From: Auanema rhodensis
Taxonomy: Eukaryota; Animalia; Nematoda
Length of the DNA: 64,000 nt
NCBI GenBank assembly: GCA_964057225.1
Contig: OZ059894.1
Location: 11,470,001 to 11,534,000, forward strand
Direction of reading: 5' to 3'
Positions 1,137 through 49,500 of the stretch are shown here, piece after piece. The notes below the pieces were generated by a model. That model saw nothing but the letters and a program-made list of their open reading frames with translations, was not told where the DNA came from and searched no databases. A program made the translations under genes and the position numbers. Position 1 is the first letter of the stretch; the number at the start of each line of letters is the position of its first letter.

Positions 1137-1924
1137 TATTGAAGTAGATAATGTTTGTCCCGGAGGACTACAATATTAAAATAATTACTGAAGCCCGAAG
1201 GCAGCGAGAAATAGTAAGGATACTACCTGCACTGAGTGCGTCGTATCATAAAAAAAGAGATAGCTAATGGGCAAGTTGAAGAGCTTGAAATTAACAATGA
1301 CGTCACTAGAAGTAAAGTTTTCTATCTGCAGCTGCGGGTAAAGAGGGTCAGCGTAAGCAGAATTCAATTCTACCAACAATTAGTGGGAACATTGAGAGAA
1401 CAGATGAAGGAGGAAATTGTAACTTCAAGTAAAATAGATTATATCTTCAGCTGCGGGTAAAGAGAGTCAGCTTTGTACAGATTACTAGTTTACATAAGAA
1501 GTGGTAACATTTCAAAAAAGGAGCACAACATAAAAAACGAGACTACGGACTATGAGGTAAATGTTATCATTGTCTGGATCGATGATTCGGCATTTGATTG
1601 CAGCTGCGGATTGAGTGGATCAGCTTGCATGGCGTCCGCATTCGACATCAGGGAAAATGATGAGTTTCTTGAGGTCCGGCTCGGCGGGCTGTTATGTCCT
1701 ATTCCCTGTTGATGGTGTTGTTGTCCTTGAGCTTGTTCTTCTTCCCAGAAAAAAAAAAACTGTGAAGCTGAAGAGTCCTATTAAACGTCTTTAAACGCAA
1801 GATTAATAAGAAGCTACTACAGCTAACACAGGACCGCCTCAAGGCCTGGTAGATCAACCAGTGTTGCTTCAATCACCAAGTATTGCGGCCTGGGCCCTTG
1901 GATCAATTCACAACACCAGTATAG
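1137..1924 (-). mobile_element. Non-autonomous U2-targeted retroelement A (788 bp, SINE-like)
   Basis: Same U2 insertion site as Utopia; ends in TTCAATAA; no RT ORF; shares 5' and 3' blocks with 34392-35256. Confidence 0.85.
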
Positions 1925-3096: not shown

Positions 3097-3911
3097 CAAC
3101 AGTAAAAAGTCCAATCAAGAGAGAAATTTTTTCAACACATAGTTGTTTTTTTTTTAAATATCATTGTTTTTCCTCATAACTCGGTTTAAACTCGTTCTAA
3201 CCCGTTGAAATACGTCTAGAAAGTCTTTATAACATGCATATGTATGATAGAACTTCATATTTATTGTAATAGAAAATTTTATTTTCAGACGTCTTGGTTA
3301 ACAATGATATGTTTTACCCCCTTATAATTTTTATCATAATGTTCCTTATACGGAACGCTCAATGAAACTTGCTTCCAGAAAAATTTCTTTCTATTTTTTC
3401 TTCATATGTACGTAGATACTATAGAGAACTATGATAGAAAACTTTAACATTCACGAAATCATCATTTCTCATTACGCTACGGAGGTTTAAAAAGCTGTGT
3501 TTTACCTTATAATAGACCGGAAAACCCTTGTGTTAAAACTGGACCGTTTTTACACATATAAAAATGTCCCGTATTCGGGACCCTAATGTAACTTTTGATT
3601 CCCTATATTTTTTTTCATGAAATTTACAATCTACTGTAGAAAGAAGAATTATTTTTATAAAAACTGTAAATTTTTGAAAAATGAAAACAAAACGAAAACA
3701 AAAACAACTTTTTTTTGAACATTTTCTCACACAAGGGTCCCCCCTTACCTACTTTTTTTCTCATTACTCGTTTCAACCTCATCCGATCACTCTGCAAACA
3801 TGTTTAATCGTTCTAACTTGTTGAAATACGTCTTAAAAGTCTAAACAACATGCATATGCATAATAGAAACCACCCGAATAGGCCCCACGCACTAAACGAG
3901 ATATATACATT

Positions 3912-4036
3912 ACCAGTATAGTAATAGAACACATATTGAAGATTAATTCGATAAGAACAATTTATTGACGTAGAGAATGTTTGTTCCGAAAAACTACAAT
4001 ATTAAACTATAAAAGTAACAAAAGCGTAGAGGCAGC
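3912..4036 (-). pseudogene. Decayed element/U2(39-79)/element junction, present in all 20 complete spacers
   Basis: 3922-3962 matches U2 nt 39-79 at 36/41; 3963-4006 matches the element A 3' end at 38/44; 3912-3921 equals the element A 5' end (ACCAGTATAG). Confidence 0.85.
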
Positions 4037-4279
4037 AAAGACATGAATAAACATAAATGTAAATACAGAATTACCAGGTAGTACATAAGTATGACAAAAA
4101 ATTATAAGAAAGCCATGAAAATAGAAGGTTTGTGAACAAATGAGAGGTACATCTTTGATCGTATAGTCATTTCTAAACCGTTCGTATGCTGCAGCATCGT
4201 CATAAGCGTCACTCAAGTTGAATTTCCATGTGTACTACACGATTTTCATTCTTATTGTTACATTCTTTCCCTGAGGGAA

Positions 4280-4463
4280 TGGGCCGTTCCCGCCAGCAGT
4301 GCAAGAGCGGGTCGACCCGTGAGGTGGAGCTAGCAAGCCAGCATCTACCTCAAGTCTCAAAAATCGGTTAACCTTATTGTGAACCAATGGAACACATATC
4401 GAAGGTTAATTCGATAAGAACGATTACTACACTTTGATCTTAGCCAAAAGGCCGAGAAGCGAT
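4280..4463 (-). ncRNA. U2 snRNA
   Basis: ATCGCTTCTCGGCCTTTTGGCTAAGATCAAAGTGTAGTA, stems IIa/IIb, Sm site ATTTTTG, loop IV TTGCACT. Confidence 0.96.
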
Positions 4464-5576: not shown

Positions 5577-6758
5577 ACAGTAAAAAGTCCAATCAAGAGA
5601 GAAATTTTTTCAACACATAGTTGTTTTTTTTTTAAATATCATTGTTTTTCCTCATAACTCGGTTTAAACTCGTTCTAACCCGTTGAAATACGTCTAGAAA
5701 GTCTTTATAACATGCATATGTATGATAGAACTTCATATTTATTGTAATAGAAAATTTTATTTTCAGACGTCTTGGTTAACAATGATATGTTTTACCCCCT
5801 TATAATTTTTATCATAATGTTCCTTATACGGAACGCTCAATGAAACTTGCTTCCAGAAAAATTTCTTTCTATTTTTTCTTCATATGTACGTAGATACTAT
5901 AGAGAACTATGATAGAAAACTTTAACATTCACGAAATCATCATTTCTCATTACGCTACGGAGGTTTAAAAAGCTGTGTTTTACCTTATAATAGACCGGAA
6001 AACCCTTGTGTTAAAACTGGACCGTTTTTACACATATAAAAATGTCCCGTATTCGGGACCCTAATGTAACTTTTGATTCCCTATATTTTTTTTCATGAAA
6101 TTTACAATCTACTGTAGAAAGAAGAATTATTTTTATAAAAACTGTAAATTTTTGAAAAATGAAAACAAAACGAAAACAAAAACAACTTTTTTTTGAACAT
6201 TTTCTCACACAAGGGTCCCCCCTTACCTACTTTTTTTCTCATTACTCGTTTCAACCTCATCCGATCACTCTGCAAACATGTTTAATCGTTCTAACTTGTT
6301 GAAATACGTCTTAAAAGTCTAAACAACATGCATATGCATAATAGAAACCACCCGAATAGGCCCCCACGCACTAAACGAGATATATACATTACCAGTATAG
6401 TAATAGAACACATATTGAAGATTAATTCGATAAGAACAATTTATTGACGTAGAGAATGTTTGTTCCGAAAAACTACAATATTAAACTATAAAAGTAACAA
6501 AAGCGTAGAGGCAGCAAAGACATGAATAAACATAAATGTAAATACAGAATTACCAGGTAGTACATAAGTATGACAAAAAATTATAAGAAAGCCATGAAAA
6601 TAGAAGGTTTGTGAACAAATGAGAGGTACATCTTTGATCGTATAGTCATTTCTAAACCGTTCGTATGCTGCAGCATCGTCATAAGCGTCACTCAAGTTGA
6701 ATTTCCATGTGTACTACACGATTTTCATTCTTATTGTTACATTCTTTCCCTGAGGGAA

Positions 6759-8051: not shown

Positions 8052-9232
8052 ACAGTAAAAAGTCCAATCAAGAGAGAAATTTTTTCAACACATAGTTGTT
8101 TTTTTTTTAAATATCATTGTTTTTCCTCATAACTCGGTTTAAACTCGTTCTAACCCGTTGAAATACGTCTAGAAAGTCTTTATAACATGCATATGTATGA
8201 TAGAACTTCATATTTATTGTAATAGAAAATTTTATTTTCAGACGTCTTGGTTAACAATGATATGTTTTACCCCCTTATAATTTTTATCATAATGTTCCTT
8301 ATACGGAACGCTCAATGAAACTTGCTTCCAGAAAAATTTCTTTCTATTTTTTCTTCATATGTACGTAGATACTATAGAGAACTATGATAGAAAACTTTAA
8401 CATTCACGAAATCATCATTTCTCATTACGCTACGGAGGTTTAAAAAGCTGTGTTTTACCTTATAATAGACCGGAAAACCCTTGTGTTAAAACTGGACCGT
8501 TTTTACACATATAAAAATGTCCCGTATTCGGGACCCTAATGTAACTTTTGATTCCCTATATTTTTTTCATGAAATTTACAATCTACTGTAGAAAGAAGAA
8601 TTATTTTTATAAAAACTGTAAATTTTTGAAAAATGAAAACAAAACGAAAACAAAAACAACTTTTTTTTGAACATTTTCTCACACAAGGGTCCCCCCTTAC
8701 CTACTTTTTTTCTCATTACTCGTTTCAACCTCATCCGATCACTCTGCAAACATGTTTAATCGTTCTAACTTGTTGAAATACGTCTTAAAAGTCTAAACAA
8801 CATGCATATGCATAATAGAAACCACCCGAATAGGCCCCCACGCACTAAACGAGATATATACATTACCAGTATAGTAATAGAACACATATTGAAGATTAAT
8901 TCGATAAGAACAATTTATTGACGTAGAGAATGTTTGTTCCGAAAAACTACAATATTAAACTATAAAAGTAACAAAAGCGTAGAGGCAGCAAAGACATGAA
9001 TAAACATAAATGTAAATACAGAATTACCAGGTAGTACATAAGTATGACAAAAAATTATAAGAAAGCCATGAAAATAGAAGGTTTGTGAACAAATGAGAGG
9101 TACATCTTTGATCGTATAGTCATTTCTAAACCGTTCGTATGCTGCAGCATCGTCATAAGCGTCACTCAAGTTGAATTTCCATGTGTACTACACGATTTTC
9201 ATTCTTATTGTTACATTCTTTCCCTGAGGGAA

Positions 9233-9378: not shown

Positions 9379-12300
9379 AATGGTTTATTGAATAACTAAT
9401 GTTATGAAACAATAAATAACCAATAAAAAAGAGCCCAGAATCGGGGAGACGGTATTACCAGTACAACTTAAAACAGCAAGTGATTAAAAAGTACAAAATA
9501 AAACACATTACCAACAGAGGCTAAAACGACTCAAGAGTCGGGGGAGTGGGTTAAAAAAAGTAATGAATAACAAAAAAAATGAATAATAAAGCAGAACAGT
9601 GAAAAGTAAATATCAAGTGCCGCTATGATCAAACAATTTGAGTGCCTACGGCAATGGTGTTAAAAATAAACAACAAAATACATGTACCAATGAAGGTCAG
9701 AAAGAGAGAAAGAAAAAAGACAAAAATAAGTAATACAAAAAGTAAAAAATATATTACAATCAAATCACAAACAAGTCAATGGATAATTTCTTCTTCATAC
9801 TGCCTTACACCAGAAACATGTTCCACGTAGATATTCCTGGCCCACTTGATGGTATCGGCGACGACGAGCTTCTCCATTAGCCGGTTGTAGTGGCTGCTGA
9901 TCTTGAGTGATCGGAGGGCTTGTACGTTGAGCGGGTCCATAGTTCCAAGCATTCCTACGACATACGCTTCTACACTAGTCTTATAACCAAGACATTGGTA
10001 TTGGCTGGCTATGTCAGCATATTTCCTCTCCTTTATCATACGCGCGGCTATCATGGCTTGTCGGCGGTTTTCATAGCTCACTGTAACATCAACGATACTA
10101 CAGTGTTTTGCGTCATGATCGACCACTACTATGTCAGGTCGGAGTGTACTATTAATGCCAGGAAGAGGCTGGTTAGTGTAAACTTCTCCGTTTTTAGGCT
10201 CTGGCAGGGCTTTGATAAGACGGTCCACGATGTTGTTGTGGCGGAGTTGGATTGCTCTCGTGTGAAAGTGGCAGTGTCCAAGAACATGTGCAGCAGTTTC
10301 GTTGGGGTAACTACACCTGCGGCACTGTTTGTTTCCTTCTCCGTGTCTTCTACAGCCATTGAGCTGGAGAGTATTAAGTCGAGCCTTGTGGATGAATCGC
10401 CAATCAGCAAACCGTATGAAATCTCCCTTCGCCATAAAGTGATTGGACGCTTTGTTGAGCATTGTGACATCAAAGACTTTCCCTTGATCCGGTTTTTGAA
10501 GAAGGATCCGAAGGTCTTTCAGCCATAATGCACGTCGCAGGCTTCTGTGGCATAGTGAAGGTGTTAACAGTTGGTTGTTTAGATTGAGTTCTAAACCACT
10601 TTCGAGGCATGTCCAGTTAGCGTTGATGAGTTTCTTGAGTTGACGCATCGCTACTCTTACTCTAGTCCAGATGGAGGAAACATCAGATGTTTCGGTGTCG
10701 AAAATGCCATCAACGGAACCGTTGTAATATGCAGCTGTCTCATCGTTACTGGCTTGACGTTTAATCCTTTTTGATGCTACTTTTATTGAGTCTTGATGCG
10801 CAATATCAGCTACTACAAGATCAGATGACTTCAAAAGTTGGTAGGCATGAGTGACTTCACAGACGTCTGACAGGTGTTGGAGTCGAGAGAGACCAAGTCC
10901 GCCGTAGTTGGTTGGCAGGTAGATTGGTTCAGCACTGGCGTTTGGAGGATAGTGCATCCATCTACGGGCACAGCGTTTGAGTTCTTTGTCAAAGGCGACT
11001 AGTTTACTCTTTGGGACGTGGCCATTCGTCATATGAAAATTAAGGCAGGGCATCAGGAAGGTGCGTACTGCGTCAGCTTTCTGCCATTCAGCCAGTAAGG
11101 ATTTGTCAATTTTTTCCAAGTGTTGACTCATGATATTCACTGTTGGAACCGCAGACTTATGTAAATGCATTCCAGTAGGGATTCCCAGGTGGGAGTAGCT
11201 GTCAAATTTGCTGAGAGCGGGTAGAAAGCAGCTCTGAAGCATGTATGAGGCTGTTGATATTTTCCCTTTGTCGATCGTCAAAGTGGCGCATTTCGCTGGT
11301 TTGAAGGTCAAGCCTGTGAAATTAGCCGCATTTGATGCTGCGTCCAACATTTTCTGTAGATCTTCTGATGATGAGGAGACCAGGGCAAGGTCATCGGCGT
11401 ACGCTAGCACAGCGATGTTGTGATTGTGTAGCTTATAGCCTGTAGAGGTTTCCAAGATGGTTTTAATTAGAGGTTCAATGGCAAGGTTGAACAGGATCGG
11501 AGATAGTGGGGATCCTTGTAACACACCTGCGTGAACTGGAATGGTCGAAGTGAGTCCGGAGCCTGTCTGGATTCTTGTAGAGGCATCTGTGTATAGAGCT
11601 CGTACTCGGGATATTGAGGCTTCAGCCATTCCTGACCATCTTAGAACGTCTAGCAGAGTTTCGTGTGGCAGCGATCCAAAAGCGTTTGCGAGATCAAGCC
11701 AAGCAATTGCAATTTTCTCACGTTTACGTTTAGCGTCTGCAATGGTACTTTGCAACAAAAAGTTGTGTTCCATGCATCCAGCTTTGGCCACAAAGCCCTT
11801 TTGGGAGGGAGAAAGTCTTTTTTCTGCTCTTGCCCATGTTAGCAGTCGATGCGTAAGACAAGCTGAGTACGTCTTACCAATTGTGCACGAAAGTGCTATT
11901 GGTCGCCAGTTGTTAATGTCAGCTTTATCACCTTTCTTATGGATGAGGACGGTGGTCGACTCTTTCCAGGAAAAAGGGATGTGTCCTAGCTTGTGTACGG
12001 TGTTAAATATCGCTGCTAATATGTGACCTCCTTGGTCAAATTTCTTCCAGTGCGAGTATCGAAGTCCATCAGCTCCTGGAGCCGTATCGCTGCAACGTCG
12101 TATGCGTTCCCAGACTTCCAAAGGGGTGAAAACACCTTCTAATGGGTCGGTACTAGTTGGCAAATCCGGTCTGGTGACTGTGATGGGGAGGGCTGGGCCT
12201 TGACTGCTGTGAACAGAAAGGAAGTGTTTTTCAACATCTGCAGATGGTATGGTGCAGGTTTCACTTTGTTCTCCGAGCAGTTGTCGAAAGGCTTTCTTCT

Positions 12301-13106
12301 TGTTGGCCCTCCAAAGCTTCTGGATCTTCATCGCCTGGGTTTTTTGGTCTTCCTCAGGTTGTGTGTGTGGTCGGCGCCTTTGTCGGAAGTTGGGAACTTT
12401 GATCATAATGTCAAGAGACTTTCTGATTGTGTCTACCAACTCTTCCAGGACCTGCTCGAGCTCACTTTTGCATACTACCTTTTTAATTCTATCCACCCAA
12501 ATATTTTCAGAGTTTCTATTCGGATCAGGGTCGGCAAAAGATGGTTCTGTACTCGGAACCCTGATCTCGTTGAATATTTCACTCTCTCGCGGAAGGGGGG
12601 AAACTTCGGCCTCTGGGGACAAGTCCAGAATTGGGGCCTCAAACAAGCGTACCGTTGATGGAGATCCTTGTTCCTGTCCACTGGATGATGTTTCCTCCAT
12701 TGTACGCTCCTCCACGGGCGGGGTGGTCGTCCTTGTGCCTGGTGGGCGGGTGTTCCTGATCCTCCGCAATATAGGGCGGGAACTGGGCTCTCTCGGAGAT
12801 AGAGGTGAGATCACCACAGTTTCCTCTATGATGCGGAGGCATCCTTCAGCTTTTTTCTGATGGCTTTTAACGGCCTTCAGATTGCTGGTGAGGCCACAGG
12901 CACGGCACTCAAATTCTACTCCGACCTCATGTTCTCTCCGAAGATGGCGGACGAGACCATTGTGGTCTGAGTAGGATCGCGGAATAGGAGCGCAGATTGA
13001 ACAAGAAAAAGGGCTCTGAAGAGGCACCTTTAGCTTGTAAAGCCCTTGCTCCATCTCTAGCAGATCTAAAGACTTACGTAGTACAGTTGCAATATCGATT
13101 TAGCCA
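9379..13106 (-). mobile_element. Full-length Utopia-type (U2-targeting, RLE) non-LTR retrotransposon, variant alpha, 3728 bp
   Basis: Single RT-RLE ORF inserted in U2 in the same orientation; 52-nt unique 5' UTR; about 400-nt U-rich 3' UTR ending AATAAACCATT. Confidence 0.94.
9776..13054 (-). CDS. Retrotransposon protein: zinc fingers + reverse transcriptase + CCHC knuckle + restriction-like endonuclease (1092 aa)
   Basis: C2H2 finger CSIC...HLRREH; RT motifs APGADG, NWRPIAL, LDLANAF, QGSPLSP, YADD, GGLGL; CRRC...ETAAHVLGHC; RHN; RPDIV...VDV...KERKY. Confidence 0.97.
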   Translation of the reverse strand: MEQGLYKLKVPLQSPFSCSICAPIPRSYSDHNGLVRHLRREHEVGVEFECRACGLTSNLKAVKSHQKKAEGCLRIIEETVVISPLSPREPSSRPILRRIRNTRPPGTRTTTPPVEERTMEETSSSGQEQGSPSTVRLFEAPILDLSPEAEVSPLPRESEIFNEIRVPSTEPSFADPDPNRNSENIWVDRIKKVVCKSELEQVLEELVDTIRKSLDIMIKVPNFRQRRRPHTQPEEDQKTQAMKIQKLWRANKKKAFRQLLGEQSETCTIPSADVEKHFLSVHSSQGPALPITVTRPDLPTSTDPLEGVFTPLEVWERIRRCSDTAPGADGLRYSHWKKFDQGGHILAAIFNTVHKLGHIPFSWKESTTVLIHKKGDKADINNWRPIALSCTIGKTYSACLTHRLLTWARAEKRLSPSQKGFVAKAGCMEHNFLLQSTIADAKRKREKIAIAWLDLANAFGSLPHETLLDVLRWSGMAEASISRVRALYTDASTRIQTGSGLTSTIPVHAGVLQGSPLSPILFNLAIEPLIKTILETSTGYKLHNHNIAVLAYADDLALVSSSSEDLQKMLDAASNAANFTGLTFKPAKCATLTIDKGKISTASYMLQSCFLPALSKFDSYSHLGIPTGMHLHKSAVPTVNIMSQHLEKIDKSLLAEWQKADAVRTFLMPCLNFHMTNGHVPKSKLVAFDKELKRCARRWMHYPPNASAEPIYLPTNYGGLGLSRLQHLSDVCEVTHAYQLLKSSDLVVADIAHQDSIKVASKRIKRQASNDETAAYYNGSVDGIFDTETSDVSSIWTRVRVAMRQLKKLINANWTCLESGLELNLNNQLLTPSLCHRSLRRALWLKDLRILLQKPDQGKVFDVTMLNKASNHFMAKGDFIRFADWRFIHKARLNTLQLNGCRRHGEGNKQCRRCSYPNETAAHVLGHCHFHTRAIQLRHNNIVDRLIKALPEPKNGEVYTNQPLPGINSTLRPDIVVVDHDAKHCSIVDVTVSYENRRQAMIAARMIKERKYADIASQYQCLGYKTSVEAYVVGMLGTMDPLNVQALRSLKISSHYNRLMEKLVVADTIKWARNIYVEHVSGVRQYEEEIIH

Positions 13107-34391: not shown

Positions 34392-35256
34392 TATTGAAGT
34401 AGGAAATGTTTTGCCCCGTAGGACTACAAGTAAATATTATCTAGCACAAGGCTATTAGAGAATGATAAGATACTACCTGCACTAAGTGCGTCGCATCGTA
34501 AAGGGAAAAAAAATTAAACAATGGGAGTTTAACAGCATGAAATTGAGAGAAAAGACATATCCGAGTGTGAATAAAATTACGGGTGAACGGAACATGGAGT
34601 ACGAGAGACATACAAAACGAGACTAAGTGAAAAGAAAAAGTCTTGTATCACGTTCATGAAGGTTCGACGGATCCGGTAAGAAGCTGCGGGTTCAGAAGGT
34701 CAGCTTTCATCTCGTAGTCGTGGCGCATCAGGAATTTGTGAAGCTTTCCGGCTTTGCAGACGGCTGTATTGGTCCTCGTAGGATGGTGGAAGATGTTGTC
34801 GCTTAGTGATGTTACACATAAAGATATGCAAAAATAGAACAATTCAAAGAAAAAGAGCACAATTAAAACGAGATTTGGAGAGAAGAGAAGTCTTATATCA
34901 CTTTCGATGGTTCGGAAGCTCCAGTCTGCTGCTGCGGTTTAGGGGGTGCAACTGGCATGTCGGAGGCGTAGCACATCATAGGTCAAGCTTGCTGGACTCC
35001 CGGCTCGGCTGGTGGCTGTGAGTTTTCCTTGTGCTTGTTCTCGGTGGTGGTCCCTGGGCTGTCTCTTCACCAAAAATTACTATACTAATTGCACATTTCA
35101 TTTAAACGACCCATTTCAGAAGCTTTAAGAGGAAAAGCTACAATTAGCATAGGACCGCCTCAAGGCCTGGTGGATCATTCAATTTAGTTTCAATCGCCAA
35201 GTATAGCGGCCTGGGCCCTTGGGTCAATTCACTGAACCAGTGTAGTATCGATTGTT
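34392..35256 (-). mobile_element. Non-autonomous U2-targeted retroelement B (865 bp, SINE-like)
   Basis: Same U2 site; U2 nt 39-79 present on both sides; terminal blocks homologous to element A; no RT ORF. Confidence 0.87.
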
Positions 35257-46472: not shown

Positions 46473-46530
46473 TTAACCTTATTGTGAACCAATGGAACAC
46501 ATATCGAAGGTTAATTCGATAAGAACGATT
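46473..46530 (-). pseudogene. U2 fragment nt 39-96 between two stacked retrotransposons
   Basis: 58 bp identical to U2. Confidence 0.92.
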
Positions 46531-49500
46531 AATGGTTTATTGAATAACTAATGTTATGATACAATAAATAACCAATAAAAAAGAGCCCAGAATCGGGGAG
46601 ACGGTATTACCAGTACAACTTAAAACAGCAAGTAATTAAAAAGTACATAATAAGACACATTGCCAACAGAGGCTAAAACGACTCAAGAGTCGGGGGAGTG
46701 GGTTAAAAAAAATGAACAAAAAAATGAATATTAAAGCAGAACAATGAGAAATCAAGTGCCGCTATGATCAAACAATTTGAGTGCCTACGGCAATGATGTT
46801 AAAAATAAACAACAAAATACATGTACCAATGAAGGTCAGAAAGAAAGAAACAAAAGACAAAAATAAGTAATACAAAAAGTAAATACATTACAATCAAATC
46901 ACAAACAAGTCAATTGATAATTTCTTCTTCATATTGCCTTACACCAGAAACATGTTCCACGTAGATATTCCTGGCCCACTTGATGGTATCGGCGACGACG
47001 AGCTTCTCCATTAGCCGGTTGTAGTGGCTGCTGATCTTGAGTGATCGGAGGGCTTGTCCGTTGAGCGGGTCCATAGTTCCAAGCATTCCTACGACATATG
47101 CTTCTACACTAGTCTTATAACCAAGACATTGGTATTGGCTGGCTATGTCAGCATATTTCCTCTCCTTTATCATACGCGCGGCTATCATGGCTTGACGGCG
47201 GTTTTCATAGCTCACTGTAACATCAACGATACTACAGTGTTTTGCGTCATGATCGACCACTACTATGTCAGGTCGGAGTGTACTATTAATGCCAGGAAGA
47301 GGCTGGTTAGTGTAAACTTCTCCGTTTTTAGGCTCTGGCAGGGCTTTGATAAGACGGTCCACGATGTTGTTGTGGCGGAGTTGGATTGCTCTCGTGTGAG
47401 AGTGGCAGTGTCCAAGAACATGTGCAGCAGTTTCGTTGGAGTAACTACACCTGCGGCACTGTTTGTTTCCTTCTCCGTGTCTTCTACAGCCATTGAGCTG
47501 GAGAGTATTGAGTCGAGCCTTGTGGATGAATCGCCAATCAGCAAACCGTATGAAATCTCCCTTCGCCATAAAGTGATTGGACGCTTTGTTGAGCATTGTG
47601 ACATCAAAGACTTTCCCTTGATCCGGTTTTTGAAGAAGGATCCGAAGGTCTTTCAGCCATAATGCACGTCGCAGGCTTCTGTGGCATAGTGAAGGTGTTA
47701 ACAGTTGGTTGTTTAGATTGAGTTCTAAACCACTTTCGAGGCATGTCCAGTTAGCGTTGATGAGTTTCTTGAGTTGACGCATCGCTACTCTTACTCTAGT
47801 CCAGATGGAGGAAACATCAGATGTTTCGGTGTCGAAAATGCCATCAACGGAACCGTTGTAATATGCAGCTGTCTCATCGTTACTGGCTTGACGTTTAATC
47901 CTTTTTGATGCTACTTTTTTTGAGTCTTGATGCGCAATATCAGCTACTACAAGATCAGATGACTTCAAAAGTTGGTAGGCATGAGTGACTTCACAGACGT
48001 CTGACAGGTGTTGGAGTCGAGAGAGACCAAGTCCGCCGTAGTTAGTTGGCAGGTAGATTGGTTCAGCACTGGCGTTTGGAGGATAGTGCATCCATCTACG
48101 GGCACAGCGTTTGAGTTCTTTGTCAAAGGCGACTAGTTTACTCTTTGGGACGTGGCCATTCGTCATATGAAAATTAAGGCAGGGCATCAGGAAGGTGCGT
48201 ACTGCGTCAGCTTTCTGCCATTCAGCAAGTAAGGATTTGTCAATTTTTTCCAAGTGTTGACTCATAATATTCACTGTTGGAACCGCAGACTTATGTAAAT
48301 GCATTCCAGTAGGGATTCCCAGGTGGGAGTAGCTGTCGAATTTGCTGAGAGCGGGTAGAGAGGAGCTCTGTAGCATGTATGAGGCTGTTGATATTTTCCC
48401 TTTGTCGATCGTCAAGGTGGCGCATTTCGCTGGTTTGAAGGTCAAGCCTGTGAAATTAGCCGCATTTGATGCTGCGTCCAACATTTTCTGTAGATCTTCT
48501 GATGATGAGGAGACCAGGGCAAGGTCATCGGCGTACGCTAGCACAGCGATGTTGTGGTTGTGTAGCTTATAGCCAGTAGAGGATTCCAAGATGGTTTTAA
48601 TTAGAGGTTCAATGGCAAGGTTGAACAGGATCGGAGATAGTGGGGATCCTTGTAACACACCTGCATGAACTGGAATGGTCGATGTGAGTCCGGAGCCTGT
48701 CTGGATTCTTGTAGAGGCATCTGTGTATAGAGCTCGTACTCGGGATATTGAGGCTTCAGCCACTCCTGACCATCTTAGAACGTCTAGCAGAGTTTCGTGT
48801 GGCAGCGATCCAAAAGCGTTTGCGAGATCAAGCCAAGCAATTGCAATTTTCTCACGTTTACGTTTAGCGTCCGCAATGGTACTTTGCAACATAAAGTTGT
48901 GTTCCATGCATCCAGCTTTGGCCACAAAGCCCTTTTGGGAGGGAGAAAGTCTTTTTTCTGCTCTTGCCCATGTTAGCAGTCGATGCGTAAGACAAGCTGA
49001 GTACGTCTTACCAATTGTGCACGAAAGTGCTATTGGTCGCCAGTTGTTAATGTCAGCTTTATCACCTTTCTTATGGATGAGGACGGTGGTCGACTCTTTC
49101 CAGGAAAAAGGGATGTGTCCTAGCTTGTGTACGGTGTTAAATATCGCTGCTAATATGTGACCTCCTTGGTCAAATTTCTTCCAGTGCGAGTATCGAAGTC
49201 CATCAGCTCCTGGAGCCGTATCGCTGCAACGTCGTATGCGTTCCCAGACTTCCAAAGGGGTGAAAACACCTTCTAATGGGTCGGTACTAGCTGGCAAATC
49301 CGGTCTGGTGACTGTGATGGGGAGGGCTGGGCCTTGACTGCTGTGAACAGAAAGGAAATGTTTTTCAACCTCTGCAGATGGTATGGTGCAGGTTTCACTT
49401 TGTTCTCCGAGCAGTTGTCGAAAGGCTTTCTTCTTGTTGGCCCTCCAGAGCTTCTGGAGCTTCATCGCCTGGGTTTTTTGGTCTTCCTCAGGTTGTGTGT

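Follow-up and report, generated by a model that had tools for sequence, protein, structure and literature searches.

The window analysed here (64,000 nucleotides, C1:11470001-11534000 in the 181 Mb genome of Auanema rhodensis; positions given without a contig are counted from its first letter) lies inside a tandem U2-5S array. The array runs on the minus strand in the window, where it contains 17 intact U2 genes and 39 5S genes, together with additional U2 genes that are interrupted by insertions. The array unit of ~2.47 kb consists of one U2 snRNA gene and two 5S genes (units of 2.12 kb have one 5S gene), and the units are 99-100% identical to each other. As a whole the array occupies ~1.3 Mb of C1, at 10.9-12.2 Mb, and the U2 3' end with the start of the spacer occurs in 412 copies genome-wide, all of them on C1. 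In the reference unit the intact U2 gene (4274..4463, minus strand) matches the Rfam U2 model over its full length with 148 bits, and is followed by a 236-nt 3' flank (4038..4273, minus strand) that has no homology to the mobile elements described below. In its first 12 nt this flank is similar to the conserved one of dispersed U2 genes on contigs C3, C4 and C8; a broader homology of the array spacer to the flanks of those genes was considered and rejected, as the likeness ends after ~12 nt. A search of the spacer with Rfam for other RNA-gene fossils, at E values up to 5, returned nothing credible.

Three kinds of insertion interrupt U2 genes in the window, all in the U2 sense. One is an autonomous element of 3727 bp (9380..13106, minus strand), flanked by U2 nt 1-96 and U2 nt 38-190, with an ORF of 1092 aa that contains an RVT_1 domain (E = 5e-28). 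The closest named relatives of this ORF are nematode and scorpion proteins; its closest proteins, 55-56% identical, are on metagenome contigs of 3.6-4.6 kb and are too distant for comparison of spacers, and an exact-protein look-up for sister species gave no match. The element fits the Utopia group, which comprises non-LTR retrotransposons that are specific for U2 snRNA genes and carry a restriction-like endonuclease, and which has known nematode members, for example Utopia-1_PPac (Kojima and Jurka 2015, PMC4640811), and it is referred to below as Utopia. The other two kinds are non-coding elements, here called riders, which rely on a retrotransposon of Utopia type: live rider A (788 bp; 1137..1924, minus strand; flanks U2 1-79 and U2 39-96) and live rider B (865 bp; 34392..35256, minus strand; flanks U2 1-79 and U2 39-190), both of which served as comparators. 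Two further families are found elsewhere in the array, C (742 bp, locus L034) and D (783 bp, loci L030 and L035); A, C and D have their first ~106 nt and last ~125 nt in common. Where elements are stacked in one gene, U2 nt 39-79 precedes a rider and U2 nt 38/39-96 precedes Utopia. The array also holds a chimera of 919 bp (L029, C1:11336991-11340737, minus strand 1501-2419) that consists of rider A nt 1-749 and the last 179 nt of Utopia between U2 1-79 and U2 38-96; a truncated Utopia at L052, which follows a T run, starts at the same Utopia position as does the Utopia part of this chimera (3549/3550). At C1:11633674-11636425 four rider 3' junctions are spaced 906 bp apart (865 + 41), which suggests four B elements stacked in one U2 gene.

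Downstream of the U2 gene, the spacer of each unit in the window contains a short composite relic which on the minus strand reads as a rider 3' tail, then U2 nt 39-79, then the first 10 nt of rider A. A junction of this composition had been noted ~320 bp past U2 when the stretch was read without database searches (the sequence-only reading), and its description proves accurate to the base. The distance from the U2 3' end at 4274 downstream to the start of the U2-like piece (3962-3922) is 312 nt. The rider tail (75 nt; 3963..4037, minus strand), which lies flush against this piece, has 38/44 positions of its last 44 nt in common with the 3' terminus of element A (1137-1924). The decayed remnant of U2 nt 39-79 (3922..3962, minus strand), the equivalent of the U2 'head' left between stacked riders, is identical to array U2 at 36/41 positions and differs from it by C42T, C59T, G64A, C75T and G79A, all five of which are GC>AT transitions. 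The rider head (3912..3921, minus strand) reads CTATACTGGT and then breaks off; its 10/10 agreement with A extends equally to the heads of C and D, and not to that of B, so that its assignment to A was right about the match and too narrow about the family.

Each of the three pieces is significant by itself. The U2 piece is recovered by BLAST with E = 1.4e-9 (within the window). The alignment of the spacer to the element consensus, which the sequence-only reading had put forward as a check, gives with nhmmer and a profile of families A, B, C and D a single match in the 1349-nt spacer, namely the tail (spacer 237-311, 75 nt, E = 4e-10). A match of 10/10 for the head at its fixed position has P ~1e-6 on spacer composition, and the decamer has no second occurrence in the unit. 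The manner in which the pieces are joined is that of live insertions: the tail end ...CAATA directly adjoins the U2 39-like AATTG, a flush boundary between tail and U2 nt 39 that is also present in live A, B, C and D insertions, and the U2 piece is 41 nt long with boundaries at exactly nt 39 and nt 79, as in live stacks before riders. All three pieces abut as they do in live stacks such as L027 (rider B, U2 39-79, rider A), and live seams of the same form occur in the window at 1079-1136 and 46473-46531 and at L027 and L035, which bears out the view that this is a seam of the form to be expected where one non-autonomous element is stacked on another.

The tail is indeed a rider 3' end, as had been proposed, but by sequence comparison it is closest to family C and not to A: its last 40 nt match C at 35/40, A at 34/40 and D at 33/40 positions, and the two bases diagnostic of C are present where A and D differ. 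Four tail positions are unlike every family and private to the relic (three C>T and one G>A). Thus the relic as a whole shows nine GC>AT transitions and zero changes of any other class at sites with a clear parent state, which fits unselected decay in a spacer of 30% GC. A hairpin in the tail was evaluated as a sign of selection through compensatory change (GTCC-TCCG-GGAC to GTTT-TTCG-GAAC, with the stem kept) and rejected, since 48 of the 126 possible sets of four GC>AT changes keep the stem (P ~0.38). Homology to the riders stops at the limits given above. Beyond the head, A nt 11-110 aligns with the post-relic sequence no better than do shuffles in anchored and local alignment (anchored p = 0.65); on the tail side, the match to the family profile ends at 75 nt, and decay-aware anchored alignment of the 100 nt upstream gives p = 0.05-0.7, so that homology further upstream is not significant. 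The four-family profile detects no surviving element homology in the remainder of the spacer, and the relic itself is not homologous to the 3.7 kb Utopia element and lacks an ORF, whereas that of an autonomous Utopia-type element encodes a reverse transcriptase and a C-terminal zinc-knuckle/restriction-like endonuclease. The source of the tail may have been a rider or a truncated autonomous element with the same tail; an autonomous element with a rider tail was not located, the protein searches having returned one Utopia lineage only.

The 125-nt string at 3912-4036 is present in 20 exact copies on the minus strand of the window, one in each of its 20 units (20/20), in agreement with the earlier claim of identity in all 20 spacers. 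The second copy lies at 6391..6515, and the remaining exact copies, of 125 nt each, start at 8865, 15108, 17589, 19708, 21825, 24302, 26757, 28872, 31335, 33878, 37259, 39722, 42231, 52260, 54737, 57208, 59681 and 62154; where no element intervenes the copies are 2115-2543 bp apart. Genome-wide the relic junction is found in 404 copies at up to 3 mismatches, compared with 412 U2 3' ends, and 100 of 100 among the matches listed are exact, which places the relic in about 98% of the ~410 units. The same relic thus lies at the same place in nearly all units, which are themselves near-identical throughout, the pattern by which concerted evolution is recognized. The relic is a true fossil of a stacked junction of rider, U2 39-79 and rider that has been fixed by homogenisation of the array. 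That occupied units are able to spread is evident from C1:11941068-11980104 (L001-L012 and L021), where 13 consecutive units, spaced by 3292-3313 or 2943-2947 bp, each carry a rider A that is 100% identical to the query; they represent one parasitised unit amplified as a block and not 13 separate hits, and parasitised units can therefore sweep the array. (Upstream of one A-occupied unit, in L001, a rider B fragment is succeeded by a run of N at minus strand 395-594, which may be an assembly gap.)

Fusion of neighbouring units by aberrant insertion can be observed in the present-day array. Units with a U2 3' end but without the relic pattern, and other fetched stretches, were examined for such junctions, and five independent examples were obtained (L039, L041, L044, L046 and L047). 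In each of them the Utopia 3' end sits on normal U2 38-190 followed by normal spacer, while the 5' end is joined inside the preceding unit, and neither the remainder of the spacer nor the 5S genes nor the promoter of the next U2 is left; each event joins an intact U2 to the remains of the next U2 and so fuses neighbouring units. The 5' join of L039 is at spacer +51 and belongs to a Utopia copy 5'-truncated to 1.1 kb, and that of L041 is at unit position 1315, with AT-rich filler. The other three joins lie in the relic, and their downstream sides were verified in L049-L051. In L044 (C1:11202200-11203700) the join is no more than 3 nt from the boundary between relic tail and U2, the site equivalent to the nick, and a full-length Utopia follows after U2 nt 1-96; in L047 (C1:11288500-11290000) it is 26 nt upstream of that boundary, with T-run filler, then U2 nt 2-96 and, as in L044, a full-length Utopia; and in L046 relic-U2 nt 66 is joined to Utopia at about codon 55. 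Since the relic tail, and not a U2 promoter, stands upstream of the U2 leader (nt 1-96 or 2-96) in L044 and L047, the leader travels on Utopia RNA from the U2 start site. An inversion junction is also located in the relic (L045, C1:11226400-11227900), where relic-U2 nt ~49 is followed by 34 nt of A-rich filler and inverted U2 184-38 with a Utopia tail. Three of the five long-range 5' joins and this one inversion breakpoint therefore fall within ~55 nt of the relic. Four of the five joins were ascertained by loss of the relic pattern, and with the sample space restricted accordingly, 3/4 fall in the zone (p ~0.02); over-representation of the relic as a site of aberrant 5' joins is thus suggestive only.

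Fusion of this type offers a route to the relic, to which as a whole we give about an even chance, and in which the order of events is reconstructed from the live junctions by analogy. A U2 gene would already have been occupied by a rider of A/C/D type, giving U2 1-79, rider and U2 39-190. RNA of a C-type rider, or of an autonomous partner with the same tail, would then have been reverse-transcribed by target priming at nt 38/39 of the U2 1-79 piece; the new copy would have kept only its last ~75 nt, and its 5' end would have been joined to the 3' flank (at +236) of the intact U2 one unit upstream, with loss of the intervening DNA, to give intact U2, flank and tail, followed by U2 39-79 and the rider. 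A later deletion would have left 10 nt of the downstream rider. Finally the fused unit, with one good U2 and its 5S genes, would have displaced the other units through conversion or unequal exchange, and the relic would afterwards have decayed by GC>AT changes. The five live junctions are present-day analogues of the second step, so that an origin by fusion has precedent in this array. Two rearrangements are needed, a fusion and then a deletion, and no intermediate survives. The sequence-only reading had proposed that the current unit descends from a parasitised unit which regained a whole U2 and then swept the array. Descent and sweep agree with the fixation in about 98% of units and with the spread of the 13 A-occupied units, but the regaining of a whole U2 is an unnecessary step, because the whole U2 can be that of the upstream neighbour.

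Stacks of a related kind are found at dispersed U2 loci on contig C8, where an intact U2, extended by 11-12 nt at its 3' end, is followed by up to 14 copies of U2 38/39-190 with the same extension. The period is 163-164, and 31 junctions are present at no fewer than nine loci, among them L033 (6982700-6984100), L036 (9537000-9538600), L037 (10054000-10055600) and L038 (10183600-10185200); the C1 array has none. A 5S gene lies ~550 nt downstream at L033. Like the relic, these stacks consist of an intact U2 and then a partial U2 that starts exactly at the nick site. Unlike the relic, they lack an element tail, U2's own 11-12 nt 3' extension being what stands before nt 39, and their copies are young (97-99% identical) and reach nt 190, whereas the U2 piece of the relic ends at nt 79. 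The C8 stacks have the appearance of pre-U2 RNA that was inserted as a copy at the Utopia nick site, a process that would rebuild an intact U2 upstream.

As such they count in favor of a different account of the relic, which spells out a speculation of the sequence-only reading and in which RNA running from U2 nt 1 through the 236-nt flank into a rider tail, made either as a read-through transcript or by a jump of the enzyme from a short rider RNA to U2 read-through RNA, would have been copied into nt 38/39 of a rider-occupied U2; the U2 part would anneal to target U2 1-38, and a whole U2 would be rebuilt upstream of the old U2 39-79 and its rider. That Utopia RNAs carry a U2 leader (L044 and L047; U2 nt 1-96 or 2-96 in a place that lacks an upstream U2 promoter), and that chimeric elements such as L029 exist, both speak for templates of this kind. 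This account nevertheless requires either a U2 that already had a tail 236 nt beyond its end or an exact template jump, involves no fewer events than unit fusion and still needs the later deletion; no other copy of flank plus tail was seen before a genuine U2 39, tail-less U2 stacks are absent from the C1 array, and the only present-day module of the kind, a U2 with flank and truncated Utopia at L039, has a single-copy junction, which does not support its mobility. We therefore regard it as unlikely. Its extension, that intact U2, 236-nt flank and rider tail were once a mobile cassette which rebuilt a working U2 in front of the parasite, is quite improbable; the Utopia enzyme would have used a transcript from the U2 promoter as template for insertion into occupied U2 genes, and the C8 stacks would reflect the same process with plain pre-U2 RNA. 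If true, it would mean that the machinery of a retroelement itself repairs or multiplies the host gene. Capture of retroelement cDNA at chromosome breaks is known from other systems, and repair of a double-strand break in the spacer with a ~126-nt piece of a stacked junction (DNA, or cDNA of a co-transcript of the stack) would account for the relic by one event, with flank and post-relic sequence formerly contiguous. That the piece is short and breaks off arbitrarily at either end (75 nt of tail, 10 nt of head) agrees with this, but no other small rider or Utopia patches are present in the about 230 kb of array examined, the empty site was not found, and unit-fusing aberrant insertions have been seen five times; a captured patch is on this evidence decidedly unlikely.

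Two further readings concern not the route but the standing of the relic. Its presence alone, in the absence of an outgroup species, cannot prove direction, and it might be argued that the riders took their tail and head from the spacer. This reversed polarity is barely credible: U2 is the only possible source of the middle piece, whose flanks are just those of live stacks, dispersed U2 genes are without the array spacer, and the states private to the relic are all AT against GC states common to four rider families and U2, from which it follows that the relic derives from riders and U2 and not the reverse. The relic might instead be kept by function, as a decoy for insertions (which the sequence-only reading had suggested), as a source of silencing RNA against riders, or in U2 3'-end formation. 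In favor of a function are its position in the likely read-through path of every U2 gene, its 404 copies (at up to 3 mismatches; 100/100 among the matches listed exact), and the three aberrant 5' joins and one inversion breakpoint inside it. Its identity among copies is no evidence of function, however, because whole units are 99-100% identical; its own changes are of the unselected GC>AT kind, and survival of the tail hairpin is compatible with chance (P ~0.38). Nor does it behave as a decoy. No Utopia 3' end (at up to 1 mismatch) and no A, B or D 3' end abuts relic U2, compared with 116 at nt 38/39 of genuine U2 (the tail of family C is indistinguishable from the relic's own tail in such a scan), so that the relic absorbs no insertions. 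The joins that do use the relic delete 5S genes, which is damage and not protection, and any present effect would thus be harmful or neutral. A function is accordingly highly improbable, and the relic is a dead fossil without a demonstrable job of its own.

Of the target only the downstream half remains in the relic, which is why it is never nicked and primed. In the two-subunit model of R2 the upstream-bound subunit nicks the bottom strand and primes, and the downstream-bound subunit cuts the top strand (PMC6895275). By analogy, one may speculate that an enzyme which binds the downstream half and cuts the top strand would draw 5' joins, and never 3' joins, to the relic. The half-site idea borrowed from R2 is an analogy only, and we know of no Utopia biochemistry. 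In other respects Utopia in this array is similar to R2/R1 in rDNA, both being site-specific, with a restriction-like endonuclease, and resident in a tandem multigene family. R2/R1 insertions have a precise 3' junction and a variable 5' junction with fillers and upstream deletions; the deletions observed here differ in that they reach about 2 kb into the neighbouring unit.

Some parts of this picture are already known. Tandem Utopia insertions with U2 fragments between the copies have been described in Nasonia and Phytophthora (PMC4640811), and both the elements of that study and those of this array have a 3' junction at a constant position within U2, 5' boundaries that differ from family to family, and stacked copies. 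The relic differs from Utopia in having no coding sequence and in lying in the spacer and not in the U2 gene, and non-coding riders are a type of partner of which that paper (PMC4640811), where the term 'non-autonomous' does not occur, makes no mention. Remains of transposable elements fixed across a U2 array are likewise known: every unit of the human RNU2 array is described as containing the same remains (one LTR and five Alu), which are ascribed to concerted evolution (PMC3795722, citing Pavelitz et al. 1995). The likeness to the present case is that of two U2 tandem arrays with the same element remains in every unit. The human remains are those of generic elements that landed in the spacer, whereas here they are specific for the array's own gene and include a piece of this gene cut at the insertion site. 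What is particular here is that remains of elements specific for the gene of the array have been displaced into the spacer, and that they come from non-coding riders. The relic changes nothing in kind in what is known of concerted evolution or of site-specific retroelements.

The relic does set a minimum age for the riders, as an A/C/D-type head and a C-type tail predate the last homogenisation of the ~1.3 Mb array, since when the relic has accumulated about 10-12% neutral change. Its 404 half-targets, which combine five point changes with a foreign upstream half, amount to a natural experiment on target recognition: that they took none of the insertions for which genuine U2 supplied 116 junctions (0/116) means that nicking and priming require the upstream half or the bases that have changed. 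It further illustrates that neighbouring units become fused, with loss of 5S genes, through aberrant insertions, and that the product of such an event can take over an array.

Several minor features of the array were recorded along with these results. The spacer of every unit contains a direct repeat (window 3192-3252 and 3808-3868, 616 bp apart; 85% identical over 61 nt, or 84% over ~69 nt by BLAST), one copy of which starts 44 nt past the relic head; the repeat could reflect either an earlier internal duplication or the ends of a different element. Close to the array's left end, one unit carries an insertion of 1.6 kb (L055, C1:10909800-10912700, minus strand 469-2103), which lies 10 nt downstream of the relic head. 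The array is partly inverted, at C1:11237523-11266204 and in other plus-strand stretches. Its continuity is also broken by ~24 kb of non-array DNA (L042, L052 and L053; C1:11081513-11105357), the left edge of which is at unit position 429, 2 nt off the relic tail boundary. L042 was for this reason considered as a candidate for the empty site and rejected, as the sequence beyond the break is the end of a large repeated element. The ~24 kb comprise two stretches of ~7 kb that are 84% alike and have their ends in common, with a lone 5S fragment mid-way, and are probably a pair of large mobile elements.
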